The notes beneath the pieces were generated by a model, which saw only the letters and a list, made by a program, of their open reading frames with translations, did not search any database and was not told the origin of the DNA. Of a DNA stretch of 64,000 nt, positions 1,147 to 62,527 are shown one piece after another. The number at the start of each line of letters is the position of its first letter. Positions within the stretch are counted from its first letter, which is position 1. The translations under genes and the position numbers were made by a program. The stretch lies in the sequence record NC_031039.1. One strand, 5' to 3'.

Positions 1147-3099
1147 TTAGAATGTTAAGATATTGGTTGGAAATTGTGTCTGCTTAGTTGTTTCTAGTAT
1201 TTTAAATCCTAAAGATTCTAACATAATCATACCACTCTTAATATGGTCGTTAACCATCGTTTCAATATCAATAAATGGAGTAACCCACTCAGGTAATTTT
1301 TTGATTGATTTTGGTAGACACAGGATTGTAAAACCATGCTTAGAAAGATTTTCATTATCATAAATAGTTTCTTTAATGGTTTTATAGACATCCATTGGTA
1401 TTTTACCTGCTAAATCGTTTAAACTCTCAGTTGTCAATTTAATCAGATTTACTTTGGTAGGTAACACAATTTCATTATCAGGAAATAATTCATTCCAAAT
1501 AATAGTTCCTCTAATAGATTGCATTGCATAAGGATTAGCATATGATTCAATCTCATTAGCCTTGGAAGGAAGTGTATAAGTAATTTCTCCATTCATCAAT
1601 GAATTAGCAATTTCATTTTGTAAATGAACAAAGTTCCCAAATACTTTACTTAAATCAATTTTATCAGAAGATAAAATATTTTTATCCAGCATTTCAGTAA
1701 AGTAGTCTCTTACATTTTTGTTTACACTTACTTTTCTAATAGCTAAACCCTTAATATCAAGTTTAGGCTTTTCAAACATACGACCTTCTTGCATGATTAA
1801 TTTACCAGCATAACTTTTCTTATTACGAGTAAGCATTAGACGTTTATAGAAAAATTCATTTTTCATATTGATAATAGGACGTTTTTCAGAAGGAATATTT
1901 AGTTCAGATGTCATTTTCCAATAAACATTTTCAATTACCTTTGCCAATAAATATGATGCAATATTAACAACACTTACTTTACCTTCATCCGTCTCGTCTA
2001 CATTATCTGGGTAATTTTCTTTTAAGTATTTATAAAATGGATCTAACATTAAGAAGTTTGAGTCAGTATCTACTACTAATACTGTTTGTCTCTTTTCATT
2101 CTCTGCATTTTCATAACGATAGAAACTTAAATGATTATATAAAACCCATTCTTGAATATATGTCCATAACATTTCTAGTGAATCTTTAATATCTTTAGGT
2201 GGATCATTTGGATCTAAAAATTCTTTATTAATTACTTTTCCTAAAAGATTAGAGATCTCATTATTACCTAAGAATTCATAAAGATTATTTTTATAATAAA
2301 TTTTGTTAAGTGTTTGTTGATCCATTCTCTCAATAATATCTGAAAGAACCTTTACATCTGAATCATTTCTATTTCTCCATTTACGTAGGAGATATTGTAA
2401 TAATTCTCCGCTTTCAATATTTCTATTAATAATATGTGTATATACATATTTCTGTTCTTGAATGTTATTAATGTATAAAAGAACATCATTTAGATTTTCA
2501 AAGTGAAAGTTATTAGACATAAAATTCTCGAATGCATTTACAGCAGTCGTAATAATAATTACACCACTATATGTAATACTTGGACCAAAGTTTTGATTAA
2601 AGAAGATACTATTTTTCTCAACTGTTGCTCCATAAAATGAGTTAGCAAGAAGTTTAAAGGTTTTTTGCATTAAGTCTAGATTATTATATTCTGTTCTATC
2701 TTCATCATTAACATGCTCAAACATTTCTTTTTTTACTTTCTTACGTGATACCAGTAGATAATCAACCATATCAGAAAGTAAATTTACACCTTCATTATGT
2801 TTTCTATAGAATGCTCCGTAACCAGTAATTATTGGTTTCTTTTCTTCTAACCATTCAGTAACACTTAATAAATTTTTTACACTTTTTTGCTCACCATCGT
2901 TAAATACAACATTTTTACCCTGAATAGTACTATTAATTTCCTTGTCTAAGAATTCTTCAATCTCTTCTTCACTAATATTAGGAAATGAAAGAAGTAATTG
3001 TTTCTTTGCCTGTTCTTTATATTTTTCTAAGAAATTTGGATATGAATTTACATAATTTTTAGTTTCCTGCAAATTTTTCTCCTCCCAAGTATTTATCAA
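1147..3099 (-). CDS. Family B DNA polymerase, polymerase (fingers/palm/thumb) subunit of a split enzyme
   Basis: Motif B QKTFKLLANSFYG, motif C VDTDS, KKSYAG and KGLAIRK; no exonuclease motifs or motif A seen. Confidence 0.85.
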   Translation of the reverse strand: MINTWEEKNLQETKNYVNSYPNFLEKYKEQAKKQLLLSFPNISEEEIEEFLDKEINSTIQGKNVVFNDGEQKSVKNLLSVTEWLEEKKPIITGYGAFYRKHNEGVNLLSDMVDYLLVSRKKVKKEMFEHVNDEDRTEYNNLDLMQKTFKLLANSFYGATVEKNSIFFNQNFGPSITYSGVIIITTAVNAFENFMSNNFHFENLNDVLLYINNIQEQKYVYTHIINRNIESGELLQYLLRKWRNRNDSDVKVLSDIIERMDQQTLNKIYYKNNLYEFLGNNEISNLLGKVINKEFLDPNDPPKDIKDSLEMLWTYIQEWVLYNHLSFYRYENAENEKRQTVLVVDTDSNFLMLDPFYKYLKENYPDNVDETDEGKVSVVNIASYLLAKVIENVYWKMTSELNIPSEKRPIINMKNEFFYKRLMLTRNKKSYAGKLIMQEGRMFEKPKLDIKGLAIRKVSVNKNVRDYFTEMLDKNILSSDKIDLSKVFGNFVHLQNEIANSLMNGEITYTLPSKANEIESYANPYAMQSIRGTIIWNELFPDNEIVLPTKVNLIKLTTESLNDLAGKIPMDVYKTIKETIYDNENLSKHGFTILCLPKSIKKLPEWVTPFIDIETMVNDHIKSGMIMLESLGFKILETTKQTQFPTNILTF

Positions 3100-3259
3100 T
3101 TTTTAGTTATCATTTCTCTTAAAAATATCTAAGATTAAAAATAACTAATCAATATAATAATATATTTTTAAAAAGAGTTTTATTTAAACAATTAAATATA
3201 AAAGTATTTATTTCAAATAAACATTAAATTATATTAATCTGAAAGGAAAGTGATTTTCA

Positions 3260-3559
3260 ATGTCATCATTCTTCAACTTACTCACTGAGTCAAATACTAG
3301 TGATATTATTCTTGAGCAAACTTTTCAAGAAGCTAACGTAGTTCGTATGGATAAACAAACTCTTAAAAAACGTTTGCTTACTCAGGCTACACTATTAGCG
3401 GCTAAAGATGCTAACGATCCAATTTATCAAAAATATGTTAAAGCGGCTAAACAAAAACGCCATTTCCGTTCTCAAATTCAACAAAAATATGGTGCTAAAG
3501 GTCAAGCTAAAGTCCGTGAGTTCCTTAAACAGCAACAACAAGCTAAACAAGCTCGTTAA
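3260..3559 (+). CDS. Late small basic protein, probably virion head-associated
   Basis: Two AACA-N6-TA motifs upstream (3187, 3220); LLTE/ILE propeptide-like N-terminus; basic C-terminus. Confidence 0.5.
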   Translation: MSSFFNLLTESNTSDIILEQTFQEANVVRMDKQTLKKRLLTQATLLAAKDANDPIYQKYVKAAKQKRHFRSQIQQKYGAKGQAKVREFLKQQQQAKQAR

Positions 3560-6429: not shown

Positions 6430-7863
6430 ATGATAAGAGTACAACCAACTAGAATTCTTGTTGAAAATTATAAAGCTGGTGAAAGTGATAAACTAGAGAA
6501 ATCACTATCTGTATGGGATAAAACTATTTTTCAATATACCTTTTCAGCATTTTTAATTGATGAAGATACAAATCAATTATTAATTCCTGGAGGTTATGAT
6601 TACACTAAATTAAAAAAGTGTTTTCCAAGAGATAAGATAGTTAATGAAAGATTAAATGTTGATCCTTATAATAAAGTAACCTTTTCACTAAAATATCCTC
6701 CTAGAGATTCAATACAACAAGATGCAATTAAATTTCTTTTACAAACAAATGATTCACAGAAATTCTTATGTTTACCAACAGGTAAAGGAAAGACATACTG
6801 TTCTATTAACTACGTATTTAAGTCTAAGAAATTACCAATGGTATTTGTAGACCAAGAGAACTTAATGGAGCAATGGAAGAAGAGTATTCTAAATTTTACG
6901 TCAGTAAAAGAGGAAGAGATATTTCTTATTAGTGGTAGAAATAGTATTGATAAGTTAATGAAAATGAAAAAGAAAGAGCTAAAGCAATATAAGTGGTTCA
7001 TTGCTATTCATAAAACTATTGGTAACTATATTGACGATAATCCAGATAATATTGATAAGTTAATGAAACACTTAGGCATAGGTGTTAAATTGTATGATGA
7101 AGCACATGTCGAATATAAAAATATATTCTATATTGATTCATTAACTAATACTGAAAGTGTTTATATAACAGCTACTCCATCCCGAAGTGATCCAATTGAA
7201 AATAAAGTTTATCAAAATATTTTCAATGATGTTCCAATGTATAAAGTTAAAGAAGATGAAATTGTTAATTATCACAATATAATTATTGTGAAATTTAACA
7301 GCAAACCTAGTATTGATGATCAAGCCAAGATGAAATCAAAATACGGTTTTGATACAAATAGATGGTGTAAATATATTCTGGATAATATTAAATATGAAGA
7401 ATTTATGAATCATATTACAAAAAATATTATTGAAAGAGTAAATAAGAATTTTGATAAAAAAACAGTACTATTATTTCATACAATGGCTGGCAATGATGTT
7501 ATTATTAATGATCTTAAAGAAACTTACCCAAATATAGAAATTGGAAGATATAATTCCAGTATTAAGGACAAGGATAAACGCTTAAAGGAATTAGAAAAAG
7601 ATATAATAGTAACAACAGATGTATCATTTGGGAAAGCTATTGATGTTAAAGGATTAGAGATACTTATAAATACGGTTCCATTTGGATCAAAAGTTCTAAC
7701 TGAGCAGTTATTAGGTAGATTAAGGGAGATTGAAGGAAAAGAAGTATGGTATATTGATCTTGTAGATATTGGTTTTGATAGTTGTAAAAAACAATTAAAA
7801 CAGAGACAAAATATATATAATAAAAAAGCAAAGAGAATTTATGAATTAGACTTGACAAAATAG
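6430..7863 (+). CDS. Superfamily 2 helicase (UvsW-like)
   Basis: LPTGKGKT, DEAH, TAT, QLLGRLR motifs. Confidence 0.9.
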   Translation: MIRVQPTRILVENYKAGESDKLEKSLSVWDKTIFQYTFSAFLIDEDTNQLLIPGGYDYTKLKKCFPRDKIVNERLNVDPYNKVTFSLKYPPRDSIQQDAIKFLLQTNDSQKFLCLPTGKGKTYCSINYVFKSKKLPMVFVDQENLMEQWKKSILNFTSVKEEEIFLISGRNSIDKLMKMKKKELKQYKWFIAIHKTIGNYIDDNPDNIDKLMKHLGIGVKLYDEAHVEYKNIFYIDSLTNTESVYITATPSRSDPIENKVYQNIFNDVPMYKVKEDEIVNYHNIIIVKFNSKPSIDDQAKMKSKYGFDTNRWCKYILDNIKYEEFMNHITKNIIERVNKNFDKKTVLLFHTMAGNDVIINDLKETYPNIEIGRYNSSIKDKDKRLKELEKDIIVTTDVSFGKAIDVKGLEILINTVPFGSKVLTEQLLGRLREIEGKEVWYIDLVDIGFDSCKKQLKQRQNIYNKKAKRIYELDLTK

Positions 7864-18803: not shown

Positions 18804-19956
18804 ATGAGTAAATGGACAAAAAAAGTAGATGTATTTAATGATGCAGAATTTATTTTGGGAAAACCTTATAAAATTATTTTAAGTAATGATGATAAAGAGA
18901 TTGTCTATGGATTATTGTCTGATATAAGTGACTATTCATTGCAATTTATTATTTATGATAGTGATACAGGACATAAGAGAATCTCATTTAATATTCATGA
19001 GTTTTTAAATAATGATTTTATGATTGTTGAGTTAGATGACGATAATGAATTGGAATTATATTCAGGGCAAATTTATCAGATGATTTATGATACAGAAATT
19101 GCTGGTTATATGGTATCAAGTGGTGCATTTATTAAAATTGATTCAATTACAGAATATCCCAATCGTAAAATATATAATATTACTATTAAGAATAAAGGTT
19201 ATATAAAAGAATTTAAACTTGCTAAAAATCACCTTCAAAAAATTAATACAAATTCAATGAAAATTGAAATGAGTGAAGATGAATGGGATAATTTAATTGA
19301 TTATTCAACTAATAAAGATGAGGGAGTTGTAGAATAATGAAATGTCCTGATTGTGAAGGTACAGGATATGATACTTGGTTTGTTGGAGATAAAAAGATAC
19401 AAGATCATAATACCCCATGTATTAATTGTAATGGATATGGTAAAATTAAGGAGGATAATAAATGAGCGTTCAGTGGACTAAAAAAGTAGAAATAGATGTA
19501 TTTAATGGACAAAAATTTAATATTGGTAATGCTTATAAAATTTTTGCAGATAATTCCACTTATACTGGTTTATTGAAAAAAGTTACTGATGATCAATTAG
19601 ATTTTACAACTCTGAATCATGATGTTTTTGTTAGCATTGGTGATATATTAGGTGGTAGTGTAAGAATTATTGAAATGAGCGCATATAATAAAATAGATTA
19701 TAAACCGGGACAAGTTTTCAAATTAATTAGTGGTATGACAATTTGTGGGGAACGAGTCTTTAGTAATTCACTAATAATAATTGATTCCATACTTTTAGGT
19801 TCTGAAGGAAAAGATTACTATAATATTGTTATTAAAAATAAAGGTCAAATAACGAGAGAATTAAGTATAACTAAAGATAATTTTATAGAAATTGATAAAA
19901 ACTCAGAGCAAATAAGGATGACATCTAATGAATGGAAAAATATACAATTTGATTGA
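18804..19956 (+). CDS. Tandem paralogs (18804-19337, 19462-19956) flanking a 42-aa DnaJ-type zinc-finger ORF (19337-19465)
   Basis: Shared WTKKV.D.VFN...F.(L/I)G..YKI and IKNKG.I; small ORF MKCPDCEGTG...CINCNGYG with overlapping start/stop junctions. Confidence 0.7.
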
Positions 19957-23293: not shown

Positions 23294-23331
23294 AATAAAG
23301 GATAGAGACTATTTAGTCTTTATCCTTTATT
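23294..23331. terminator. Bidirectional terminator between convergent operons
   Basis: AATAAAGGATAGAGACT...AGTCTTTATCCTTTATT then poly-T. Confidence 0.8.
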
Positions 23332-25099
23332 TTTTTTTTGTATACTCAAAGACTAAATTTCCACAATCCCAAATTCTATCATAACCAGCTTCTCTCATAA
23401 TTTGAATTTCTGTTTTATCATTACTATAAATTTCTGGAAATAATTCTTTTAATCTTTGTTTTCTATAGTTGTATCTATGTGAAAGACTCAATTTATTTTT
23501 ATTAAAATACCAATAATTTGGCTGAGAGTTATGCATAAAGTGAAAGCTATTTTTATGATATACATTTCCTTCTGACCATCTTAAATCAGCATATGTTATG
23601 ATTTTATTCCAATCATAATTCTTTTTAAAATAACTGAATAATTTTCCAAAACTACCTATTACATTATAGTCTCTTTCTGTAGCAAATCTACTTAATTCAT
23701 AGTCATATTTATTCCCTTTTTGCCCTAAGCTAACTCTAGGTTTACAGAATGTCATTACTGCTACTAACTCATCACCCTCATTCCTTGGATACCATAGTCC
23801 TAGTTTAATAGTAGAGTTATCAGATCCTTGAATATGATTTTTATCTAAAAAATCTCTTTTCACATTATTCTGAATTTCTTCTATATAACATTTTCTAGCA
23901 TATATTTTTTCTCCATTATTTAAACCTAAAATATGTTTTATCTTTCCCTTTATAAGTTCTTTATTATCAATCCACTCATTCTCAAATAAATGAATTAATC
24001 TTATACCCTTTTCATTACATTTTTTCAATTTATTTAAATGGTAGTTTCTATCTTTTCCTTGAGATTCACCATGCCAATATAAACCGTTATATTCAATTGC
24101 TATTTTCTTTGAAGGTATATAAATATCCAGTTCTAAACCTTCAAGTATTTTTCTGTCTGATAGAATTACATTAGTGCTATTGGGGAGAATTTGTTTAATA
24201 TAATCATATAATTCAATCTCATCTTTTGAATTATGTTTCTTTAGTTGACATCTGGGACAATCTCTTTTAACTTTTTTACCTCTTGAATTACCATGTAAAA
24301 TATCGACCGGTCTAACCTCCCAAGAATAACCACATGAATGCTCAATAACTATTGGAGTTTTATTATTAATATATCTACTCTTAATTGTATAATCATTACT
24401 ATTAAATATTCTATAAAAATCTTCTTTAAAACCATTAGATCCTTTATTTTTTGGTTTTTTATTACATATATTACACCTTTTTCTTTTTAGGAAATTAGTT
24501 GGTGTAATAAAGAAATTATGAGAATCACTAGTATTGTGTCTCATCTCAATTTTATCTTGAGAGCTAATATATTCTCCTAATACAGTATATTCATCTCCTA
24601 CTAAATCATATACTTCTTTAATAAACATTTCAGTAGTCTTTGTCTTTTTCCTTTTTATTAGTTTCTTAGTACAATCAGGACATCTTGAACCCTTACTGAG
24701 AAAGTCATTAGGTCTTTTTTTAAATTCCTTATTACAGATGTTATGTCTAAGTAATACTAGTTTAGAACTATTAATATATTCTCCTAATACAGTATATTCA
24801 TCCCCTACTAAATCATACACTTCTTTAATAAACATTTCAGTAGTCTTATTTTTTCTTTTAGATATTCTCTCTGATTTATGTAAAGGACATCTATTACCTG
24901 CATTTAAAAAGCCATTTGGTGTGACATAGTATTCATGACTGCATTTTTCATGTTTCATTTTTATTTTATTATTAGTTCCAGTATATTCTCCTAATACAGT
25001 ATATTCATCCCCTACTAATTCATACACTTCTTTAATAAACATTTCAGTAGTCTTCTTTTTAGGCAAAACAATCATCCTTTTATATAAATTGGATTTCAA
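23327..25099 (-). CDS. Free-standing homing endonuclease-like protein (zinc-ribbon repeats + PD-(D/E)xK + Hef-like C-terminus)
   Basis: Repeats KTTEMFIKEVY.LVGDEYTVLGEY..H..C...RCP.C; ELDIYIPSKKIAIEYNGLYWH; C-terminal YELSRFA..YADLRWS..IWDCG. Confidence 0.75.
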   Translation of the reverse strand: MKSNLYKRMIVLPKKKTTEMFIKEVYELVGDEYTVLGEYTGTNNKIKMKHEKCSHEYYVTPNGFLNAGNRCPLHKSERISKRKNKTTEMFIKEVYDLVGDEYTVLGEYINSSKLVLLRHNICNKEFKKRPNDFLSKGSRCPDCTKKLIKRKKTKTTEMFIKEVYDLVGDEYTVLGEYISSQDKIEMRHNTSDSHNFFITPTNFLKRKRCNICNKKPKNKGSNGFKEDFYRIFNSNDYTIKSRYINNKTPIVIEHSCGYSWEVRPVDILHGNSRGKKVKRDCPRCQLKKHNSKDEIELYDYIKQILPNSTNVILSDRKILEGLELDIYIPSKKIAIEYNGLYWHGESQGKDRNYHLNKLKKCNEKGIRLIHLFENEWIDNKELIKGKIKHILGLNNGEKIYARKCYIEEIQNNVKRDFLDKNHIQGSDNSTIKLGLWYPRNEGDELVAVMTFCKPRVSLGQKGNKYDYELSRFATERDYNVIGSFGKLFSYFKKNYDWNKIITYADLRWSEGNVYHKNSFHFMHNSQPNYWYFNKNKLSLSHRYNYRKQRLKELFPEIYSNDKTEIQIMREAGYDRIWDCGNLVFEYTKKK

Positions 25100-25129
25100 C
25101 TATTATTTTGTTTAGTTGAAATCCAATTT
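25086..25129 (-). promoter_or_regulatory. 17-bp inverted repeat whose 10-nt loop is exactly the late promoter AACA-N6
   Basis: Arms 25086-25102 and 25113-25129; minus-strand loop AACAAAATAA followed by TA. Confidence 0.6.
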
Positions 25130-25145
25130 GTTTATCAATAAAAAA

Positions 25146-28100
25146 TTATTCTGAATATATTTTACCAATTTCTCGTTTAAGATGTACTAATGCTTTGTTT
25201 AAATATAGAGCATTATAAATATCAACGGTCATGCGTGAAACGATACTTAATGGACTCATAATGGCTTCAATGTTCTCATCTGGATCATTCTCACTAAAAG
25301 GCTCTTGATCTTTAGGAATAACATCAGATACAATTGTCTTAAGTGCTGTATAATACGTAATCTTATCTCCAATACCAAGTTCATCATCATACTCAATATA
25401 AATCTCAATGAGTAGTCCATCTACCTCAGTACCTTTAATTTTCTCACCTGATTGCTTTTGAATAGGTTTAAGATTAACAGAAGTCAGATCATTAGTAACA
25501 GACTTAATCTTATCTTCTTTCTTCTTACTATCTTTAATATAGTTCTTCAGAATCTTTTGTACTGAAGGAGAAAACTCACTGATATCCTTATTGTAATACA
25601 TTACAACATCTACAATCTTACCAGTATATTTAGAACTTACCTTGTTCTTAGATAACTCATTAATAGTCTCATTAAAGTCATCTCCTAGTTTATCTAAGAG
25701 TTGGTTGAGTGATTTATCTTCAAAGGAGTTTTCAAAGATAATCAATGGATCACCAGTCTTAACCATATCGCCTTTCTTAACAATAAAGTCAATGTTTGAG
25801 TTAACTCCAAGAGCAAGTTCTTTCTTCATAGTAATTTTAGTAGATAGGTCTTGAGATAAGCTTTCTGTGATAATACTACTATCTTCATACGTGTAATCTG
25901 CGCTTGCTAGTGCTACTTTACAAAGCTTCCCTGTAGTATACGTGATATCATCTTTCTTATCGCCAAGGAAGTAACTTGGATTCTTCGCTAGGATATCATC
26001 TTTTTTGAATTTCTCTCCTACTTTGATAATGAGTTCTTTACGATTAGCAATGTAAACAATTATCTTCCACCAAATTCGCTAGTTTTGGTGCGCCCTCTAA
26101 CGGACTGCTCCATGTTACCATGAAGTTGAGACTATATCTTCAAAGTTCCCTGTTTCCCAGTATACATAAATAAAAGTATACCAGATTTCATCTCAGAAAC
26201 CTGCCACCAATCGCTTGTGGGGTACTCTACTCATCTTTATTAATAAGATTTTCGATAGTCGTTGAACGTTCTCTATTAGTTTAATAGAGCTTCGCTTCTG
26301 ATTATCCTTTTAATAAGGACTTCCCAGAAATTAAAGGAATTTAACGTGAGCCTTTAAACCCACCATTACTATTCTTACTCATATGCTCGGAGAGATCAAT
26401 GACGTCTTTCTTACCATCATTATAACGAACGACAGCTAGTTCATGTTCTTCATCTATGGACTCTAGAACCCCATCTTTTTTTGCTCTAAACACAAAGTCG
26501 TCACTTAGAATATAAGCAACAGTCTTCTCTACACCACTACCAAATAGAGGTTTAGATTGCTTTGTGGTAGGAATGATCGTTAACTTCCATTAGATTCGCT
26601 ACGTCTAATGCGTTCTCTTATGAACTGCTCTATATTTCTATAGAGACGAGACTATATCACTATCCTTATCTATTAAGGATAACCCCCATTTCCATTTAAG
26701 GGATTCTCACCCACTCCAATCGCTTGAGCCGTACTCCTATTGCGGAATTTCACCGCTACTCACAATCCTAAGATTGCTTTCGGATAGTCGTTGAACCTTA
26801 CTCATAAAGAGTCTTGGATGCTGATTGCCCATATATCCTTTAGATTGTTACACTTTGGTACTAAAGGCTTTAGGATTTTCCAGCAGTTAAAGGGTTTTGC
26901 TAGCAATATTACTACTACTAGGCACGAATCATGCTTTTGCTGCGTTGTTTGCATTCCAACGCGCGGTGGGTCGGCATGACGAGCAGTAAAGGAGTTTAAT
27001 AACTCTGCCGGACCATAGATATTTGTCGTATTATTTTTTGTATTTGGATTGGTGTCTAAGAATCCTCGTGTGTTTTTGAATGCTGGATCAAAAGTTAACT
27101 GTCTAACCCATTACCTTCATATAGGTTCGCTACGCCTATACCGTTCTCTTATGAACTGCTCTATGTTACCATAGAGATGAGACTATATCTTTATCTAGTC
27201 AAAAAAAAAAGAAAGGAGATGACTAGATATCTCCCATTTCCATTTAAGGGATTCTCACCCACTCCAATCGCTTGAGCCGTACTCCTATTGTGTGTTAACC
27301 ACTAAAGGATAGTCGTTGAACGTTACTCTCGTTATAATTAAAAATAATTTATAAAACCGTTTTTCTCAGCAATTTCTTTTCTAAAAGTAATTGCTAGTTC
27401 TTTAGCTTTTTCAAAACCATATTTATTGACTGCAAATGTTTTAATAAATTTTTTATGATTAACACGGATTTCAGATTCCCATCTATTTTTCTTTTTAGAA
27501 TATCTTATTCCTTTAATTCCAGAAGTATTATCGTTTCTTAGTGATGTATTTCTATTATTCATCATTTGAGAAACCTCACGCAAATTACTTTTTCTATTAT
27601 TTAAACTATTTCTATCTATATGATCAATTACATTATTATTATCTTTAATATCCATTAGGTATCTATGAAGCTTTCCACCTGAATTACTTGAAATATAAAA
27701 TGAATTATTTCTTTTAGACCAGATAGCTCTCCAAACATGCTTATTTATTTTATCAATATCTTCAATATCAATTTGAGATTTTACGATACCATATGTTTTT
27801 GAAAAAGTAACTAATAATGCATGATCATCTAATACTTCAATAAAATTATATGCTCTTTTTCCTTCTTTTAATGTTTTCATAGCTATACGCTCACTATAAT
27901 CTCCATATAAAACTTCTGAATAATGTGCAAGGGAATTTGATTTCTTTTCTTTATTATAGAAACTTACTCTCCATAATTTTTGTTCTTTTAGATATATTAT
28001 TTTATTTTTTTCCATAATAGTAGCTCTCCTTTTTAACTTACTACTATTATAATATATATTTAACGAGAGTCTTCGATACGGATTGTCCTATTATTAGGAG

Positions 28101-31100
28101 TTTCCCGTAGTTAGAGAGATTTTATCATTATATATCACTATATAAGGGGGCAGTTTAATTCACCCCAACTTTCATTATCTTCCACTAGATTCGCTACATC
28201 TAATGCGTTCTCTTATGAACTGCTTCATGTTACCATGAAGATGAGACTATATCATCATCCTATTAGGATGCCTCCCATTTCCAACTCCAATCGCTTGAGT
28301 TGTACTCTACTCCCTTCCTTCTAACTAGCGTTATCACAACGATCTGTTAGAGTGGTTTCGATAGTCGTTGAACCTTACTCTAATGAGTCTTGGATGCTGA
28401 TTGTCCTTAAAGGATTTTCCAGCAGTTAAAGAGGTTTACTTATAATATTTCTATTATAAGGGACTATTATAAATCTTGTCTGGGAATTCAAGAATTATAA
28501 TAATTCAATCCGAGTCGGGTGTTGACATTGCCATGATTCCACGCATACTAGGGTCATAAGCACGAATATCAGTTGTGTAAGCATCCGTTTTCTTCATATA
28601 GGTTCGCTACACCTATACCGTTCCTTAGAACTGCTCTAAGTTTCCTTAGAGACGAGACTATATCATCACTTAAAAAGTGCCTCCCATTTCCAGCCTCAAT
28701 CGCTTAGACTGTACTCTACTCCCTTCCACTAACTAGCATTATTGTAATGATCTGTTAGAGTGGTTTCGATAGTCGTTGAACCTTTACCTTATTACAAATA
28801 ATTTGTAACTTAGGTACTTGGTTGCTTATGATTACCCAATCCTTTAAATTTTTACCATACCTGAATTGTTATATTCAGCCATCTATTATGTTTCCATATA
28901 GATTTGGTATTAAAGGCTCTAAGGGTGTTCCAGCAGTTAAAGAGGTTTTAATTGGACTAAACACTTTAATCCAAGTTTCTTCCTGAAAGCCCCTTGTAAG
29001 TAGCCGCACCACCCTTTTCAATTTCCAAAGAAGGGTTAAGGACACTATATTCATCGACAGTAGGTGAATTCATTAATGTCTTTAATAGAATATCCTGTGG
29101 AACAGACATCTTAATAGGATTACCAGCTTTCAGTGTATCCTTATACGTTTTAAATGAATCTGCCAAGATTTTATATAAGTAGGCATTTACTTGCTCAGTA
29201 CCACGAATTCGATATGAACTCATATCATTCAGTGGACTATAGCTCATATCTTCCAATAAGGTATTCGCATACAACAATATGTCATAGATATTCTCAGGTA
29301 ATTCTAACTGTTTCAGTACATCTAATGTGATAGGATCAACCATTAGAGATAGAGTATTATGAAGACCTTTACCCATATTTCTGCTACCGAACATCTCATA
29401 GAAAGTTTCAATATAAGGATCTTTAGAGTTCATTTCTTCAAATGTATACTCTTCAGTAGCCATTGTACTTAGACCACTTAATAATAGGGAATTTCTCAAT
29501 AAAGAATTATTATAATATAGGTATCCATCTTTAAAACGGATCTTGTCATAGTCATCATCAATTGTAATTCTCTTATTCTTAGTATCAAAGCTATATTCAA
29601 TATTATATCTTTCTAATAAATCTTCTAATCCTAATTCATATCCAAGAAGAACCACAAGGGGAATCATTCTATTATTGATACGAACTCGGTTATATGCTAG
29701 AGACTTAGAATTACTTAAAGAAGATAATTTTTTATAAGCTTCCTCACTAAGTGAAGTAACAATAACTTTAATAATGAGTTCTGAAAGACTCATATCAGTA
29801 TTTTCTTGTTTCTTATTATTAATCAGATAAACTCTTTTACTTGAACGCTTAAGAGCAATAACGTTTTCATTATCTTTTGTATGACCGATTGGTAAGAATT
29901 GTTTATCGTCAATATTAATCTTAGCAAGCTTAGCCATATTATCAAGATCACTTTTCAATAAATCTTCTACTTCTTTTTGACTGAACATAAGTTTATATTC
30001 ATCATTCTCTAAGCTTAGAAGGAAGGAAGAGATCTCATTATATTCAAGAGTTGTTTCATATCCCTCATTAATTGTAAGAGCATTACCTAAGCGATAATTA
30101 AACTTCTTACCTGATACCTTAAATTCATTTAAATCCATACCAAAGAGTTTCTTAAGTTTCTCAGTTTTATGAGATAGTTTAGAACCAAAACGCATGACAA
30201 AGAATTTATTATAGTTAGTAGTAATCTGAACTTCATCAGGTTTTGTTTTTACAATTGGTAGAGATAGAATTTGTTTCAAAATCAATTTTTTACCACCATT
30301 AATATTCATAAACCTACCATCTCTGATAATAGGATAATCGAATTTAACAGTATGCTTTACATTACGGTCATCTTGGAAAGTAACAGTATAAGTTAGTTTC
30401 TTTGATAAATCAGTAGATGTGTCTTCTGTTTTAATATCACTTACAAATAATTTAACATCACTATCTCCATTAAATGATGAAAGAACTGCAACTAAGTCTT
30501 TTTTCATCTGTTTCTCAAAGTAGCTCATATCAAAATCTTTAAGATTTGAATATCTAGTTTCTTCTTGAATGACATTTGTATTGGTAATTGGCTTTCGGTC
30601 AATACTTGTTGATTTAAAGTCATCAATAATATCCTGAATATTAATATCATCAAGAGTAACTTGTTTTTGTTTTTCTTTTAAACGTTCAAGAGTCTTTCTC
30701 TGTTTAATTTCATCTCCACCAGTAGACTGAAGCTCTTTAAGAGTTGAAACATCAGCTTTTAATTCCTTACTGTTATTTAAGATATCAATGATTTCATCTT
30801 CACTTTTATCAAGAATATCTTCATCACTTGAATCAATAGCTTTTTCAATATCATCACCAATCTTATCAGTAACTTCAATTGCACTACTAGATAGTTTTGT
30901 ATTTCCATCGATTTGGAAATTACTTAATAATTTTTCTTTAACTTTTTCAGATTTTTCTTTTACTAATGCATCTCTCTTGTTTTCTGTTTCTTGAGTTGCC
31001 TCTTCCTTACCTAGAGGTTTTTCATCATTATTAGTCTTCTGATGATTTGCTGTTTTAATAAGAATATTTAATGCATTAAGGAATCTATTTGCAAGAAGAT

Positions 31101-31764
31101 TAGAAAGTTCATCATTAATATTAAATTTAATAAATGTATTATTAACAGTAGTGTAAAAAATAAAATCTACATTTTTAAGTTCTTTCTTCTGTTCCTCTGT
31201 TAATAGCTTTCTCTTAATTGCCATATAGATATAAGCAAAAGGTGTTCTTGCATTATTTAAGTCAAAGAATGATGGATCAAGAACATTGTCAGGAACAGGA
31301 ATTGCTACTGCTTTATTCTCATATGATGCACCCTCTTTAATTTTAGATATAAGAAAATCAAAATACATTTCAACTCGTTTTCTTCCACGAACTTTAATCT
31401 CTACTTCATTCTCAAGATGCTCATTTGTAATATCATAGATCAAGTTAAGATCATTATAATTAGTTAAAGCACGTTTAGTATAAATAATACTAGAGCATTT
31501 TGCTTTTACCTCATCATAATATTTCTTTTGATCTACAATAATTCTTTTATTCTTCTGAATGGTATTGAATGCTCTTGGAATATATACTCCTCTAAAAAAA
31601 GAAGGACTGAATATATTAGAATTAATAAAATCAAATATCTCACTTTGATTATTTCCTGAAAAGAAAATCAAATTTGAATTACGGTCATTTTTCCTTTTTT
31701 TAATGGATGAAAGTTTTATATTAGAGTACACTCTCAATTCCTTGAGATTATCAAGATAAAACAA
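25146..31764 (-). CDS. rpoB: Phage RNA polymerase beta subunit, N-terminal half (probably virion RNAP); six exons, about 1397 aa after splicing
   Basis: Exons 31764-28969, 28585-28508, 28172-28162, 27108-26931, 26577-26358, 26056-25146 join in frame giving GLSGRNLD|DAYT..STPDSD|KVGV|VRQLTFDP..HADPPRVGMQTTQQKH|IIP..NSNGG|FYI..YTYEDS, collinear with beta motifs GPGG, TPEG, DDANRALMG.NMQRQ, RSNQ, GYNYED; late promoter at 31790. Confidence 0.9.
26057..26357 (-). mobile_element. Group I intron 5 of RNAP beta (301 nt)
   Basis: P1 GUGGGU|/GCUCAC; P10 UAAA/UUUA; P7 elements; terminal G. Confidence 0.9.
26578..26930 (-). mobile_element. Group I intron 4 of RNAP beta (353 nt)
   Basis: P1 GCAU|/GUGC; P10 GAU/AUC; P7 elements; terminal G. 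Confidence 0.9.
27338..28015 (-). CDS. Intron-encoded HNH-AP2 homing endonuclease
   Basis: LHRYLM..IDHIDRNSLNNRKSNLR (HNH); NTSGIKG..W...F.V.KYG...A (AP2); possible second AP2-like segment at the N-terminus; own SD AAGGAG. Confidence 0.9.
   Translation of the reverse strand: MEKNKIIYLKEQKLWRVSFYNKEKKSNSLAHYSEVLYGDYSERIAMKTLKEGKRAYNFIEVLDDHALLVTFSKTYGIVKSQIDIEDIDKINKHVWRAIWSKRNNSFYISSNSGGKLHRYLMDIKDNNNVIDHIDRNSLNNRKSNLREVSQMMNNRNTSLRNDNTSGIKGIRYSKKKNRWESEIRVNHKKFIKTFAVNKYGFEKAKELAITFRKEIAEKNGFINYF
28014..28061 (-). promoter_or_regulatory. Intron-internal early-type promoter plus start-codon-sequestering hairpin
   Basis: AAATATATATTAT at 28061-28049; perfect 10-bp stem 28041-28050/28014-28023 with the SD in the loop. 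Confidence 0.7.
28162..28172 (-). other. 11-nt micro-exon AAAGTTGGGGT (K-V-G-V)
   Basis: Lies between terminal G of intron 2 and P1 of intron 3; needed to keep the frame. Confidence 0.85.
28173..28507 (-). mobile_element. Group I intron 2 of RNAP beta (335 nt)
   Basis: Long P1 GGAU|U/AGUCC; conserved P4 AACUGCUGGAA and P7 elements; terminal G. Confidence 0.85.
28586..28968 (-). mobile_element. Group I intron 1 of RNAP beta (383 nt)
   Basis: P1 GGAU|UAA/UUAGUCC with U.G pair; P7 GACUAUC/GAUAUAGUC; terminal G; P10 AAGUGUU/GAUGCUU. Confidence 0.9.
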
Positions 31765-31818
31765 TTATACCCACTTCCTTTCTTAACAATATCTATTTGT
31801 TTACATAAGAAATTAAAA

Positions 31819-49105: not shown

Positions 49106-51441
49106 ATGGCAGATGAACAGCAAAACGTTGATGAACAACAGTCACAGATAATTGGAGATGAGTTTTTCCAAGAAGGTAACTCTAATTCAGATTCAAAAGG
49201 TGGATTTGGAACAAGTGTAGAATATACTGATGGTTTTGAAGCGTTAATTGGATCTTCTAAGGGTGGTTCTGGTTCTTATGCTACACCTACATGGAATCCA
49301 TATAAATCAGATAGTGTATTAGGATTACCTTTATACTATAATGATTTAGCGGATCCTTCGGGAAGAGTATACAATCAAACCATTATTCAAGATATTCCTA
49401 ATATATACATGGTTCCCGGAATTCCATCTATTAATAGAAATATGATTGACGTAGCAGGAAAACGTATTATTCCTGCTACTCTTTCTCGTGCATTAATGGA
49501 TTTTCAAAATAATCCAAATAGTATTTTTAATTTTGGAGTTAGAGGAGTAAAAAGTGGTAATGACCTTCGTTTCATAGGGTTTAAAGCAGATTATTCTGAA
49601 TACTTTAAATATGTACAAACTATGTTAAGTACTATACATTCATATATGGCAATGGATGGCATATTTGATTTATATAGATTCTCAGATGACTTTAATAATA
49701 GTTTTAAAAATTATGGATTATGTTTTTATGCAGATAAATCTACAACTATTTCTGAGTCAGCTGATAATACTTATGCGGCTTCTAGAACAGCAGAAATGGT
49801 AAGTGAGAAAGCGGCTACTTTAAGGGAAGCAGATTTATTATATCCTACAGGAAGTACAACATCTCGTATTGTTGACTCAATTAAAGCGGCTAATCCAATT
49901 GGTGTACTAGAATCATTAGGTTCATTTGATGGAATTATCACTCGTACATCAAATGCATTATTTCGTGTTGTAAATGGATCACAATTAATGTTCCCTGACT
50001 TTTGGCAAGATTCTAGATTTGATAAATCTTATAATATTAGTTTCAAATTTTATAGTCCTTATGGTGATAGAGAAAGTATATTTAGATATGTGTATGTACC
50101 TTTTATAGCACTATTAGCATTAGCATTGCCTTAAATGACGGGGCAATTAAAACTCTTTTAACTGCTGGAACATCCTTAGAGCTTATTAGACTACAACGTG
50201 ACTGGTGACAGTGAGCGTGAATGTTTAAAAACTAATAAGATTGGACAATCAGCAACTAGTTAAAACTTCCACATGGAAGTTACTAGCTCAACGACTATCG
50301 AAACCACATCATTTGATGGAAGGAAGTAGAGTACCCCACAAGCGTGGTTACATTTAGGCATAAATGTAAGTATAGTAAACTAATACTATATGGGAAACAA
50401 AGAGCATGATGAAGGCAAAAAGCTGGAGTGAAGATATAGTCTCAACTTCTATGGAAACATAGAGCAGTTCATAAGAGAACGCACTGAAGTAGCGACTCAG
50501 TGGAAGGTTATGCGTCAAGACGGTTTATTAGGATATCAGCAACCATTCTTTGTAAGAATGTCTCGTCCGGGTTAACTAAATAGCTCGGCTTATGAGTAAT
50601 CATAAGAAACAATCATTCTCTAATTGCTGGAAAGTCTTAACATGTTGTGATGAAGATAATCAGCAGCGAAGATTATTAGTTTTAGATTGTGTAATAAAAA
50701 ATTATATCAATAGTAAAATAAACAAAATAATATAAAAATAATTATTGTAAGATTAATAATATTCCACTTTTAAGAATACCATATAAATATAGGGATACTG
50801 TTGATATAATTCTAGAAGACTTCTTTACTAATAATAACGTTCAACGACTATCCGAAAGTAATCGTTAGATTATGAGTAGCCTAAAAATAGGCAATAGGAG
50901 TACGGCTCAAGTGTTTGGAGTGGGTGAAAATCCCTTAAATGGAAACGGGAATCCCCTCTTTAGAGAGGGTGAAGATATAGTCTCATCTCTATGGAAACAT
51001 AGAGCAGTTCATAAGAGAACGCATTAGATGTAGCGAATCTAATGGAAGGTAATGTATTTTGACATAGATATGGGAGTAGTAACAAGCTTAACTATCACTA
51101 AAGGCGGAGCTGATAGTCTTTGGACAGTTGACGGTCATCCGCAAATGATTGAAGTTAATATGAACGTAGTAGATTTATATCCACAAATGATCCAAATTAA
51201 AGATATTGGTTTACTTGCATATAATCTGGGAATTGCATCATTCTTAGAAAACATGGCAGGAATAAGACCAGACCAATTAAGTTTTCTTAAATTTAAATCA
51301 TTAATTAATAGAAAACTATCAAATTCATTATTGTTTACTACTTTCCTTGATGGAGGTTCAGGAATTAAAGATAGAGTTGGTAATAAATTTGCTGACTTCT
51401 TCTATGAACTACAAGGTAAGTTTAATAATATATTAAGATAA
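49106..51441 (+). CDS. Tail tube initiator/baseplate protein; three exons, about 490 aa after splicing
   Basis: Exons 49106-50131, 50513-50572, 51055-51441 join as LALALP|RQDGLLGYQQPFFVRMSRPG|YFDIDMGVVTSLTITKGG; follows the tape-measure gene. Confidence 0.75.
50132..50512 (+). mobile_element. Group I intron A (381 nt)
   Basis: P1 UUGCCU|/GGGCAA; perfect P10 UGACG/CGUCA; P7 GACUAUC/GAUAUAGUC; terminal G. Confidence 0.9.
50573..51054 (+). mobile_element. Group I intron B (482 nt) with AT-rich P6 extension
   Basis: P1 CCGGGU|/GCUCGG; P10 AAAUA/UAUUU; P7 elements; terminal G. Confidence 0.9.
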
Positions 51442-60450: not shown

Positions 60451-62527
60451 ATGAAAAATCTGTTTCTATTAGAAGATGTTGAGTTGGATGAAACAAAAGA
60501 AGAGGAAAAAGAAGTTGTAACTGAAGCAGTTATTGAAGATAAAACTGGTCTTATTGCTCTTACTCTTGAGGCTGAAATGAGCTGGAATAACCTTCATACT
60601 GAAATCGTCAAAGAAGAATTTCAAGCAATCATGAAAGAAGATGAAGAACAGGCAACTAAAAGTCGTTCAGAATTCTTCAAGAAAGCAATTGCTTTCTTCC
60701 AAGAATTATGGAAAAAATTTGTACAAGTTATTCGGAATCTAGTATCTCGTCTTCAAGTACAGTTTACTAATGGGGAAAAATTCTTAGCTTCTCGTAAGGA
60801 AAAATTAGCTCGTTATCAAGGTGATAAAACTGTTTCTATCTACAATTGGAAAGTTAAAGGAATGCTTGGAATTGCTAAAGAATTCCCAACTAATCGTTTA
60901 GGTGGCAGTCTTGTAGGAGCTATTAATCAAGCCGCTAAGAGTGGAAAAGCTGTTTCAGCTGATGAAATTGCTAAAGGATTAGGTTTTGAATCCTTCTCTG
61001 CTATTGATAAAGGTGTAGTTGCTAAAGCTCGTGGAAATGAAAAAGTTGAAGTTAAAGTTAGTCCACAAGTTCTTTCATCTGCGGCTAATGATGTCAAATC
61101 TGCTAAACAAATTCTAGGTATTGTTAATCAACTTGGAAAACAATCTCAAGGAATCATCCAAGAAGGACGTAAAGCGGCTACCGCTGGCTTAAATGCAAAA
61201 GATCCTCAAGATCAACAAAAACAAAGTGCGGCTGTTCAAACTGCAAAAGCAGCTCAATCAGTTCTTAACAAAGTACTAAATGTATTTGTTAAACTTGAAG
61301 TTGAGTGTTATGGAGATTCTATGCGTATTGTTTCTGCGGCTACTTCTGGTGGAAGTGCAGGAATGAAAGCTGATAAAAAGGCTTCTAAAAATGCGGCTAA
61401 AGGAAAACGTGGAAACGAACTAGCAGTAAGTGAAGATGTTGAACTTGATGAAGAACAACCAATTCTTACTCTTGAAGATTTTGAAGAAGATGAAGAAACA
61501 AAAGAAGAAGAGATTGCACTAGAAGATCTAGAGGATCTCAATTTAGAAGATCTAGAAGAAATTGAATAATATAAATGAGGATACGATTCTAATATGAATC
61601 GTATCCTTTTTAATAAAGTATAAGGGGGAATTATTAATGGAATTTTTAAATGACTCAATAATGACAACTGATATATTAGAAGCAGAAATGAATTTTAATA
61701 ATATCTATCATGAACTTTTATCTGAGGAAATTAGTTTATTTCTAAATGAGGATGACCCTATTGATCACAATCCAAATCCTACTGACTATAAAATGAGGAT
61801 AAAAGAAGTTGCAAATAAATTGTTGCAAGCCATAATAGATATTTGGATTGCTTTTATATCTAGAATTAAAGATGTAGTAAATAAAATTATTATCCATATG
61901 AAATTAGCAGATAAATTTATGGATCAAAATAGAAAATATCTTCAAGAATTTGAAAAGACAAATATGTATTTTTCAGATAAAAAGATTAAAGTAAGTCCAC
62001 TATTATTTGATCATCGAAGATTTGATACCGTAATGAATGCTGTTAGATCAGTTAAGATTGTTTCTGATGATATTATGAAGGTAAAAATTAGACCAGAGGA
62101 TATTAGTAAGGATACCATTCAGAAAGAATTAAGTATGAAATTAAGTAATGCTAAAAAAGAAATCAATAAAATGATTGTTGAAAAAGAAGAAGTAACACCA
62201 AATAAAGATTTATATGAAAAAAGTAAATTATTCTTACTTAAAGGTTATGATAGTTTAGTAGCTGAATTTAGTAAAATGTATAAGACTACAGATTCAATTA
62301 TTAGAACTAGTAAAAATAATTTTATAAGTAAATTTAATGTTGATACTTCTACAAGAGATGGAAAATTAGCTGTTAATGGTTATATTGAAATCTCAAGAAT
62401 GTGTGTTTCAACTGTTATTGAATGTTATTCTAGAATGCTTAGTCTCTTGAATCAATTATATACTGATTCATTTACAGTATGTAGGATGACAGTAGCTGAA
62501 GTTAAAAAAAGAAGAAATAATGACTAA
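60451..62527 (+). CDS. Two paralogous internal head proteins (60451-61569, 61637-62527)
   Basis: Acidic LxE-rich propeptides then F.KKAI.F..ELWKKF / L.QAIIDIWIAF helix; late promoter at 60395. Confidence 0.55.

Follow-up and report, generated by a model that had tools for sequence, protein, structure and literature searches.

Several related IA2-type group I introns in one gene, together with a very short exon, are known from orf142 of Staphylococcus phage Twort. As described by Landthaler and Shub (1999), summarized in PMC10136302 and PMC11878797, orf142 has three introns and a 23-nucleotide (nt) exon, and it undergoes exon skipping. A similar arrangement was analyzed here in gene g189 of Bacillus phage AR9, which encodes a beta-like N-terminal subunit of the virion RNA polymerase (RNAP) and lies in a 64,000-nt window of sequence record NC_031039.1. 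Whereas the Twort introns interrupt a tail tube gene, those of AR9 number five, interrupt a polymerase subunit gene and leave a shortest exon of 11 nt. Exon skipping has been shown for Twort and is only predicted for AR9.

Three other systems are close to this locus. In phage PhiPA3 an intron with its HNH endonuclease, gp210, interrupts a beta-like gene of a jumbo phage (the gp211/209 virion RNAP gene), likewise at a conserved site (PMC11620839). That intron is single and located elsewhere, near the conserved acidic residues around PhiKZ D1072, whereas the five of AR9 are further upstream; in addition, its competitive effect was demonstrated experimentally, while the AR9 case is known from sequence. 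CapR-like plus EDxHD/Vsr-like homing endonucleases have been reported in AR9/PBS1 introns of the gene for the N-terminal part of virion beta′ (PMC12350094). The same family is represented by AR9 g188 and by intronic open reading frames (ORFs) of relatives, namely those in intron 4 of Internexus, in an intron of Goe21 and in intron 5 of the ERZ777002 contig. The reported endonucleases differ in occupying another gene and group II as well as group I introns, whereas the member at AR9 g189 (g188) is free-standing downstream. Finally, the td, nrdB and sunY introns of T4, classic IA2 introns of phages, resemble those of g189 in core sequence (78% over 91 nt for nrdB), in having an ORF placed in a peripheral loop, and in stop codons that occur in frame at the 5′ splice site or close to it. 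In T4, however, each gene has a single intron. The AR9 family is further distinguished by a conserved 3′ tail of some 55 nt, which follows P9 and forms two covarying hairpins.

The source of the window was identified as AR9 by megablast of positions 25100-31800, which matched KU878088.1/NC_031039.1 at 100% along all 6.7 kb; PBS1, vB_BspM_Internexus and vB_BsuM-Goe21 came next, at 97-98% with partial coverage. The window corresponds to KU878088.1 positions 124001-188000, so that 124000 is added to a window position to obtain the record position. In GenBank KU878088.1 and RefSeq NC_031039.1, AR9_g189 is a six-piece joined coding sequence on the minus strand (window 25146-31764, record 149146..155764), described as 'DNA-directed RNA polymerase beta subunit, N-terminus; virion RNAP subunit'; the boundaries of its pieces were inferred from the deposited protein. 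AR9_g190 (HNH homing endonuclease, AP2 domain) is annotated inside g189, and AR9_g188 ('Hef-like homing endonuclease') just downstream. According to a 2017 mBio paper (PMC5312081), the coding sequence and early promoter of early gene g190 are inside an intron of late gene g189, and gp189 is among the virion RNAP polypeptides. The enzyme containing gp189 is reported to be present in virions and to transcribe early genes (GenBank note, PMC5312081, PMC7598289). A bioRxiv paper, a secondary source, mentions that mature AR9 mRNA sequences were determined experimentally.

The five-intron arrangement is thus already known: it has stood in GenBank since 2016, and publications on AR9 refer to it. An earlier reading of the letters of this DNA (the sequence-only reading) had left its novelty to be checked and had named an identical existing annotation as the case against novelty; the six-piece join in KU878088.1/NC_031039.1 is that case, and the g190 intron is in PMC5312081. 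The arrangement is best explained by five self-splicing, mobile and selfish group I introns that are not regulators, a reading to which as a whole we give a probability of about 0.82.

Exon structure of g189 and its fifth junction

Introns were detected with the Rfam covariance model RF00028, which has a gathering score of 50 bits. It matches five minus-strand places in 26057-28968, with E-values from 6e-10 to 2e-25. Together with the exons, these are, in the order of transcription:

Exon 1, 28969-31764, minus strand: 2796 nt, residues 1-932, with a TTG start; the ORF spans 28966-31764, and the GenBank coding sequence also ends at 31764; the last bases of the exon, ...CUUGGAU, pair with the guide of intron 1.
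Intron 1, 28586-28968, minus strand: 383 nt, no ORF; RF00028 at 28634-29011, 69.2 bits, E = 2e-15; P1 UUGGAU/GUCCAA.
Exon 2, 28508-28585, minus strand: 78 nt, 26 amino acids (aa), DAYTTDIRAYDPSMRGIMAMSTPDSD; joined to exons 1 and 3 without a break in Goe21 and homologs P0003, P0004 and P0008.
Intron 2, 28173-28507, minus strand: 335 nt, no ORF; RF00028 at 28223-28482, 102.4 bits, E = 2e-25; P1 GGAU/GUCC.
Exon 3, 28162-28172, minus strand: an 11-nt micro-exon, AAAGUUGGGGU, encoding K, V, G and two bases of V, and needed to keep the frame.
Intron 3, 27109-28161, minus strand: 1053 nt; P1 GGGGU/GCCCC and a P10 of 4 base pairs (bp); the P6 loop contains g190 and an early promoter.
Exon 4, 26931-27108, minus strand: 178 nt, placed by frame and colinearity.
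Intron 4, 26578-26930, minus strand: 353 nt, no ORF in AR9; RF00028 at 26628-26940, 76.6 bits; P1 GCAU/GUGC.
Exon 5, 26358-26577, minus strand: 220 nt; exons 5 and 6 (PBS1 allele) match E. coli beta 690-838 (BLASTP, E = 4e-11).
Intron 5, 26057-26357, minus strand: 301 nt, no ORF in AR9; RF00028 at 26108-26392, 76.3 bits; P1 GUGGGU/GCUCAC.
Exon 6, 25146-26056, minus strand: 911 nt including the stop; contains the Rpb2 domain 6/beta double-psi barrel part (Pfam PF00562).

The ligated exons form 4194 nt with one stop, the terminal one, and encode 1397 aa; exons 2 to 5 sum to 487 nt. Position 28968 is the first base of intron 1 and 26057 the last base of intron 5. The view of the sequence-only reading, that the pieces are a single gene of six exons (2796, 78, 11, 178, 220 and 911 nt) encoding 1397 aa, is borne out by frame, by colinearity and by the GenBank join. 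Three metagenomic homologs of 1379-1397 aa (P0003, P0004 and P0008; 53-68% identical to AR9 over exon 1) align colinearly with the ligated exons and show no insertion or deletion at any of the five junctions. Close relatives are also uninterrupted at individual junctions: Goe21 reads through junctions 1 and 2 (...GRNLD-DAYTTDIRAYDPSMRGIMAMSTPDSD-KV...), and PBS1 reads ...SNGGFYISNRKEL... at junction 5. The residues KVGV of exon 3 are found in every uninterrupted homolog and in the GenBank product.

The deposited protein, AMS01273.1, is 1398 aa long; an additional Val follows F1095 (GGFVYIAN) at junction 5 (window 26056-26058 and 26356-26358). Compared with it, the 1397-aa splice is identical at 1396 of 1397 aligned residues, and the sole mismatch is the TTG start decoded as M. 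The extra Val implies a 5′ splice site two bases later and, therefore, an intron ending in U rather than G. The 1397-aa model, reading GGFYIAN, is preferred because it agrees with the terminal-G rule, with the alignment of the five intron 3′ ends (that of intron 5 is ...GAUAAUUG), with the intron-less DNA of PBS1 (GGT TTC TAT), with the 3′ junction of the ERZ777002 contig (...GATAATTG followed by TTTACATT) and with every uninterrupted homolog, which reads GGF(Y/F). A one-codon error at junction 5 of the deposited protein is thus probable. The ligated junction is predicted to read GGTGGGTTTTACATT in the 1397-aa model and GGTGGGTTTGTTTACATT in the GenBank 1398-aa model, and the corresponding peptides are NSNGGFYIANR and NSNGGFVYIANR.

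Ribozyme features of the intervening sequences

The covariance search bears out the proposal of the sequence-only reading that all five intervening sequences are group I introns. Intron 3 scores as two halves (27159-27352, the 3′ half, at 51 bits, and 28012-28171, the 5′ half, at 30.7 bits) because it is split by the g190 ORF. The base before each 5′ splice site is U, and the last base of each intron is G. A U.G pair in P1, as proposed for the 5′ splice site, was likewise found in 5/5, the guide G being accompanied by 4-6 further pairs and located 6-44 nt into the intron. Introns 1 and 2 open with an in-frame stop, UAA and UGA, respectively, and end in G; across introns 1 to 5 the in-frame stops occur 0, 0, 2, 42 and 5 codons in. 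The minimum free energy of intron 2 has a z-score of -3.96. This intron is 73% identical to intron 1 and 77% identical to intron 4. The guide core GUCC is common to introns 1 and 2, whose targets both end in GGAU.

All five introns can be aligned at full length as one family with 56-77% identity, the ORF-less Internexus copy being used for intron 3. Common elements are a P3-P4 segment, GUUCAACGACUAUC (P6′ to P7), GAUAUAGUCUC (P7′) and the conserved tail of about 55 nt at the 3′ end. Compensatory changes were observed in 24 of the 51 consensus pairs, including pairs of P6, P8, P9 and the two tail hairpins, while P7 is invariant. P3 is mis-paired in the consensus fold, which was calculated with a non-pseudoknot predictor.

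Introns of subgroup IA carry P7.1/P7.2 between P7 and P3′. In the model alignments of introns 1, 2, 4 and 5, an insertion of 17-89 nt is located between P7 and P3′, and this segment is partly conserved across the five introns. BLASTN with intron 2 found 454 phage records, including Staphylococcus phage introns and the nrdB intron of T4 (78% over 91 nt, E = 5e-11), as well as 12 places in AR9 itself that match the intron 2 core. The nrdB intron is classed as IA2 in PMC11878797. The five introns thus appear to be of the phage IA type and to form one paralogous family. The label 'IA2-like' of the sequence-only reading is supported by the P7-P3′ insertion and the nrdB core identity as far as IA is concerned; subgroup IA2 itself is consistent with these data, which do not separate it from IA1 or IA3.

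Two other interpretations of the intervening sequences were discarded. Inteins were rejected, as the sequences contain stops and the matches are to RNA models. A reading as decayed ribozymes was also considered and rejected.

Outside g189, the virion protein gene AR9_g205 (window 49106-51441, plus strand) is annotated as a three-piece join. Rfam found group I introns in it at 50111-50464 (56 bits) and 50563-51004 (47.7 bits, just under the gathering score), with a short exon between them. The small ORFs g206 and g207 are in or beside the second of these introns.

Intron sites in the polymerase and their occupancy in relatives

The assignment of g189 to an RNAP beta gene, made in the sequence-only reading, holds. 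Exons 5 and 6 contain Pfam RNA_pol_Rpb2_6 (PF00562, E = 2.7e-10) and align with E. coli beta 690-838 and 1049-1109 by BLASTP; the GenBank description as a virion RNAP subunit agrees. Searching PDB with a profile of ten homologs matched 48 bacterial beta chains (best E = 1.3e-23), with GDKITYYTALK of exon 6 aligned to the beta GDKMAGRHGNKG region. The ten-sequence profile was needed because phmmer with a single sequence, the uninterrupted exon 1-3 protein of Goe21, gave no match in PDB. No Pfam domain was found in exons 1-3 (a 961-aa piece), and direct BLASTP of the end of exons 1-3 and of exon 4 to E. coli beta gave noise alone. For this reason introns 1 to 3 were positioned from a profile domain that is weak, though colinear (domain E-value 0.49, conditional E-value 2.8e-6). 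The approximate sites on E. coli beta, in segments that we take to bear the motif names given, are:

Intron 1: between E541 and R542, fork loop 2 (profile alignment).
Intron 2: between P567 and N568, the ETPEG-NIGL stretch (profile alignment).
Intron 3: the L571 codon, the ETPEG-NIGL stretch (profile alignment).
Intron 4: between Q688 and A689, MQRQA (alignment).
Intron 5: N761-T763, RSNQxT (alignment).

Within the phage family, local conservation at the sites of introns 1 to 5 is at percentiles 63, 87, 79, 67 and 97 (mean 79), which is above the level of random sites (p ~0.011 when the sites are treated as independent). The introns can fairly be said to occupy conserved segments lining the cleft, and not the very top conservation peaks. 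The sequence-only reading had placed them in the most conserved motifs of the catalytic cleft; conserved beta segments they are, but 'most' was an overstatement.

Comparison of intron occupancy among relatives, which had been proposed as a check, gave five introns in AR9, four in PBS1, five in Internexus, two in Goe21 and one in a contig of the ENA sample ERZ777002 (L009):

AR9: introns 1 to 5.
PBS1: introns 1 to 4; intron 5 absent.
Internexus: introns 1 and 2; intron 3 with g190 deleted; intron 4 with a 368-aa ORF; intron 5.
Goe21: intron 4 and a different intron 6 nt upstream of the intron 3 site, with a 344-aa ORF; introns 1, 2, 3 and 5 absent.
ERZ777002 contig: intron 5 only, 1356 nt with a 342-aa ORF and the same 3′ junction as in AR9.

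Despite these differences, the rest of g189 is 97-99% identical among the five, and at each intron site at least one of these 97-99% identical phages has no intron. Intron 1, for example, is missing at exactly the same site from Goe21 and the ERZ777002 contig. The Internexus intron 3 (L003 6642-7053) is a complete ORF-less ribozyme (74 bits), in which the promoter, Shine-Dalgarno sequence, ATG and a few codons of a g190 homolog are fused directly to its last codons (L003 6785-6830). The different intron of Goe21 (L004 5925-7273) follows GATAAGGT, 5 nt downstream of the AR9 intron 2 site and 6 nt upstream of the intron 3 site. As Goe21 is without both introns 2 and 3, these three sites may be mutually exclusive.

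The first ORF is also interrupted in more distant relatives, near residues 913, 1008, 1011 and 1015, and the intron 1 site is used in a homolog of 40% identity. One of these breaks is a group I intron (77 bits), and the others are candidate introns. Rfam gave no match for the ORF-split interruptions of L009 and L010; the L009 intron was recognized by its identity to AR9 intron 5, and the interruption of L010 is a putative intron. At least 10 interruption sites were counted within about 180 codons across relatives, including breaks seen only as ORF interruptions, showing this segment of the virion polymerase to be an apparent interruption hotspot across AR9-like phages.

The exons flanking these sites are mosaic. 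Between AR9 and the ERZ777002 contig, exon DNA diverges by 2.4% over nt 1-2800, by 17% over nt 2801-3283 and by 0.4% in exon 6. The 17% block is exactly the intron-bearing stretch (L009 6800-7283), and its differences are mostly synonymous. The 3′ half of exon 4 occurs as two haplotypes, with AR9 equal to Goe21 and Internexus resembling the ERZ777002 contig. Exon 5 is near-identical in AR9, PBS1, Internexus and Goe21, and these four and the ERZ777002 contig agree at 99% over the final 996 nt of exon 1. Such a mosaic would be expected from recombinational intron movement with co-conversion, or from selection for cleavage-resistant targets.

Three features of the AR9 locus concern endonucleases:

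g190, 27338-28015, minus strand: 225 aa, in intron 3; HNH homing endonuclease with AP2 (Pfam AP2, E = 7e-14; HNH_3, E = 7.5e-5).
Early-promoter element AAATATATATTAT, 28049-28061, minus strand: in intron 3, an exact match 34 nt upstream of the g190 ATG.
g188, 23327-25075, minus strand: free-standing homing endonuclease gene 70 nt downstream of g189 (Pfam DUF4379, CapR).

The AR9 early-promoter consensus is from PMC5312081, and its exact copy before g190 agrees with the description there of g190 as an early gene inside late g189. Elsewhere in the window, one-mismatch copies at 7809-7821 (+), 19168-19180 (+) and 61832-61844 (-) are not annotated as promoters in GenBank; matches to the element number 11 in the window, against 3.9 expected by chance.

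Among the AR9 introns, intron 3 contains an endonuclease ORF, and introns 1, 2, 4 and 5 do not. AR9 introns 4 and 5 are thus without an ORF where intron 4 of Internexus and intron 5 of the ERZ777002 contig carry CapR/Vsr-like ones. The 344-aa ORF of the Goe21 intron is also CapR/Vsr-like and is homologous to the Internexus intron 4 ORF (E = 4e-61); in Pfam, both contain repeated treble-clef/CapR modules and a Vsr/DUF559-like C-terminus. The Internexus ORF also matches g188 (BLASTP, E = 2e-34). g188 is present in PBS1 and the ERZ777002 contig and absent at this position in Goe21, and it probably belongs to the mobile-element hotspot of g189.

The records of PBS1, Internexus and Goe21 (L002-L005) leave the g189 homolog unjoined: its pieces appear there as individual genes, labelled 'hypothetical protein' or 'RNA polymerase beta subunit', and its small exons lack any annotation. 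Three 'partial hypothetical proteins' of a Bacillus subtilis assembly (P0019, P0020 and P0022; locus tags DA469_...) match parts of gp189 at 99-100% identity and come from contigs of about 3 kb each. This suggests AR9/PBS1-like phage DNA within a bacterial assembly, through a carrier state or contamination.

Proposed intron mobility, competition and splicing

In the proposed mechanism, each intron would be excised from the late g189 transcript by guanosine attack after the U.G pair of P1, and the flanking exons would be ligated after the terminal G, so that the 1397-aa protein could then be translated. Splicing of all five introns is a precondition for gp189. Recombination triggered by endonucleases would carry the introns into intron-less alleles of co-infecting relatives. 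Likely candidates for these enzymes are the early HNH-AP2 endonuclease g190, the CapR/Vsr-like enzymes found in introns 4 and 5 of relatives and the free-standing g188, each presumed to have its target site in an intron-less allele. The ORF-less introns would probably hitch-hike by co-conversion, since all five sites are within 487 nt of exon sequence.

Several observations count against this picture. Four of the five AR9 introns are without an endonuclease, and their mobility is deduced from relatives. The P1 helices of introns 2 and 4 have just 4 bp and are weak alone. In intron 4, translation may continue for 42 codons before the stop, which might impair folding. In addition, an adaptive role in competition between phages would make 'purely selfish' too strong.

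That last point leads to the alternative that survives best, which overlaps with selfish mobility. Here g189 would be a locus of competition or incompatibility, partly adaptive, where intron-borne and neighboring endonucleases cut the essential virion polymerase gene of co-infecting intron-less AR9-like phages and so bring AR9 an advantage in relative fitness. There is a precedent in PhiPA3, whose HNH enzyme gp210, in an intron of the virion RNAP gene, cuts PhiKZ gp178 and lowers PhiKZ progeny 3.7-fold in co-infection (PMC11620839). In AR9, the HNH enzyme g190 is served by a separate early promoter, and very close relatives have alleles without the introns. Across precisely the target region, the intron-less haplotype differs by 17%, for the most part at synonymous positions, as would be expected for cleavage-resistant alleles; nevertheless, the divergent block could equally be a co-conversion tract imported with an intron. 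The model for the proposal is PhiPA3 gp210 acting on PhiKZ gp178. At 97-99% similarity, however, homing repair from the intron donor is likelier than killing. We regard it as possible but rather doubtful.

The sequence-only reading had proposed that five sequential splicing events gate production of the virion RNAP, that is, that ordered or rate-limiting reactions set the timing or amount of the enzyme. As all five introns must be removed, the efficiencies of the five reactions would multiply to set the yield; g189 belongs to the late genes (PMC5312081), and a 'molecular switch' has been suggested for other phage introns (PMC11878797). Nevertheless, relatives of 97-99% identity have four, two or one intron and homologs of 53-68% identity have none, so the life cycle does not require the introns. 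Each group I intron splices independently of the others, the sequence imposes no order on them, and the late promoter already sets timing. No order or regulatory role is indicated, the proposed gate is unsupported given that relatives do without most or all of the introns, and regulation is very unlikely.

The weakest alternative, that splicing does not occur and the pieces yield separate polypeptides or belong to a decaying pseudogene, is barely credible: jumbo-phage beta/beta′ homologs are naturally split into several genes (PMC7598289) and the PBS1, Internexus and Goe21 records annotate separate ORFs, but exons 2 to 5 encode 26, 3.7, 59 and 73 residues and each lacks a start codon, the intervening stretches score highly as ribozymes and show compensatory changes, uninterrupted homologs exist and gp189 is a virion protein (PMC5312081). 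A natural split of g189 into separate ORFs was likewise considered and rejected.

Functional, self-splicing, mobile introns that have built up in a conserved part of an essential gene accordingly remain the preferred reading of g189, and it can be extended. We tentatively suggest, as something well short of an even chance, that the 487-nt stretch is a hotspot of both multi-element homing and competition, with mechanistic consequences that have not been described. In this extension, g190, enzymes of the g188 type and their intron-borne relatives would attack intron-less alleles, and ORF-less introns would be co-converted. The intron-less haplotype with 17% synonymous divergence would be a cleavage-resistant allele. 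The overlapping sites (introns 2 and 3 against the Goe21 intron between them) would be mutually exclusive and mutually protective alleles. Finally, some transcripts would be mis-spliced by skipping of the 78-nt exon, in frame, or of the 11-nt exon, out of frame. Exon skipping in AR9 g189 is a reasonable prediction in view of the 11-nt exon and of the guide GUCC and target GGAU shared by introns 1 and 2.

The analysis provides a probable error in a deposited protein, a set of unjoined annotations in relatives and a map of intron occupancy. With five ribozymes in 487 nt of coding sequence, g189 is to our knowledge the most intron-dense phage gene on record. This density and the 11-nt exon make it a good natural system for studying how neighboring ribozymes fold without interfering with one another, whether exons are skipped and how intron clusters spread. 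If it does occur, exon skipping would be a measurable cost to the production of the virion polymerase.

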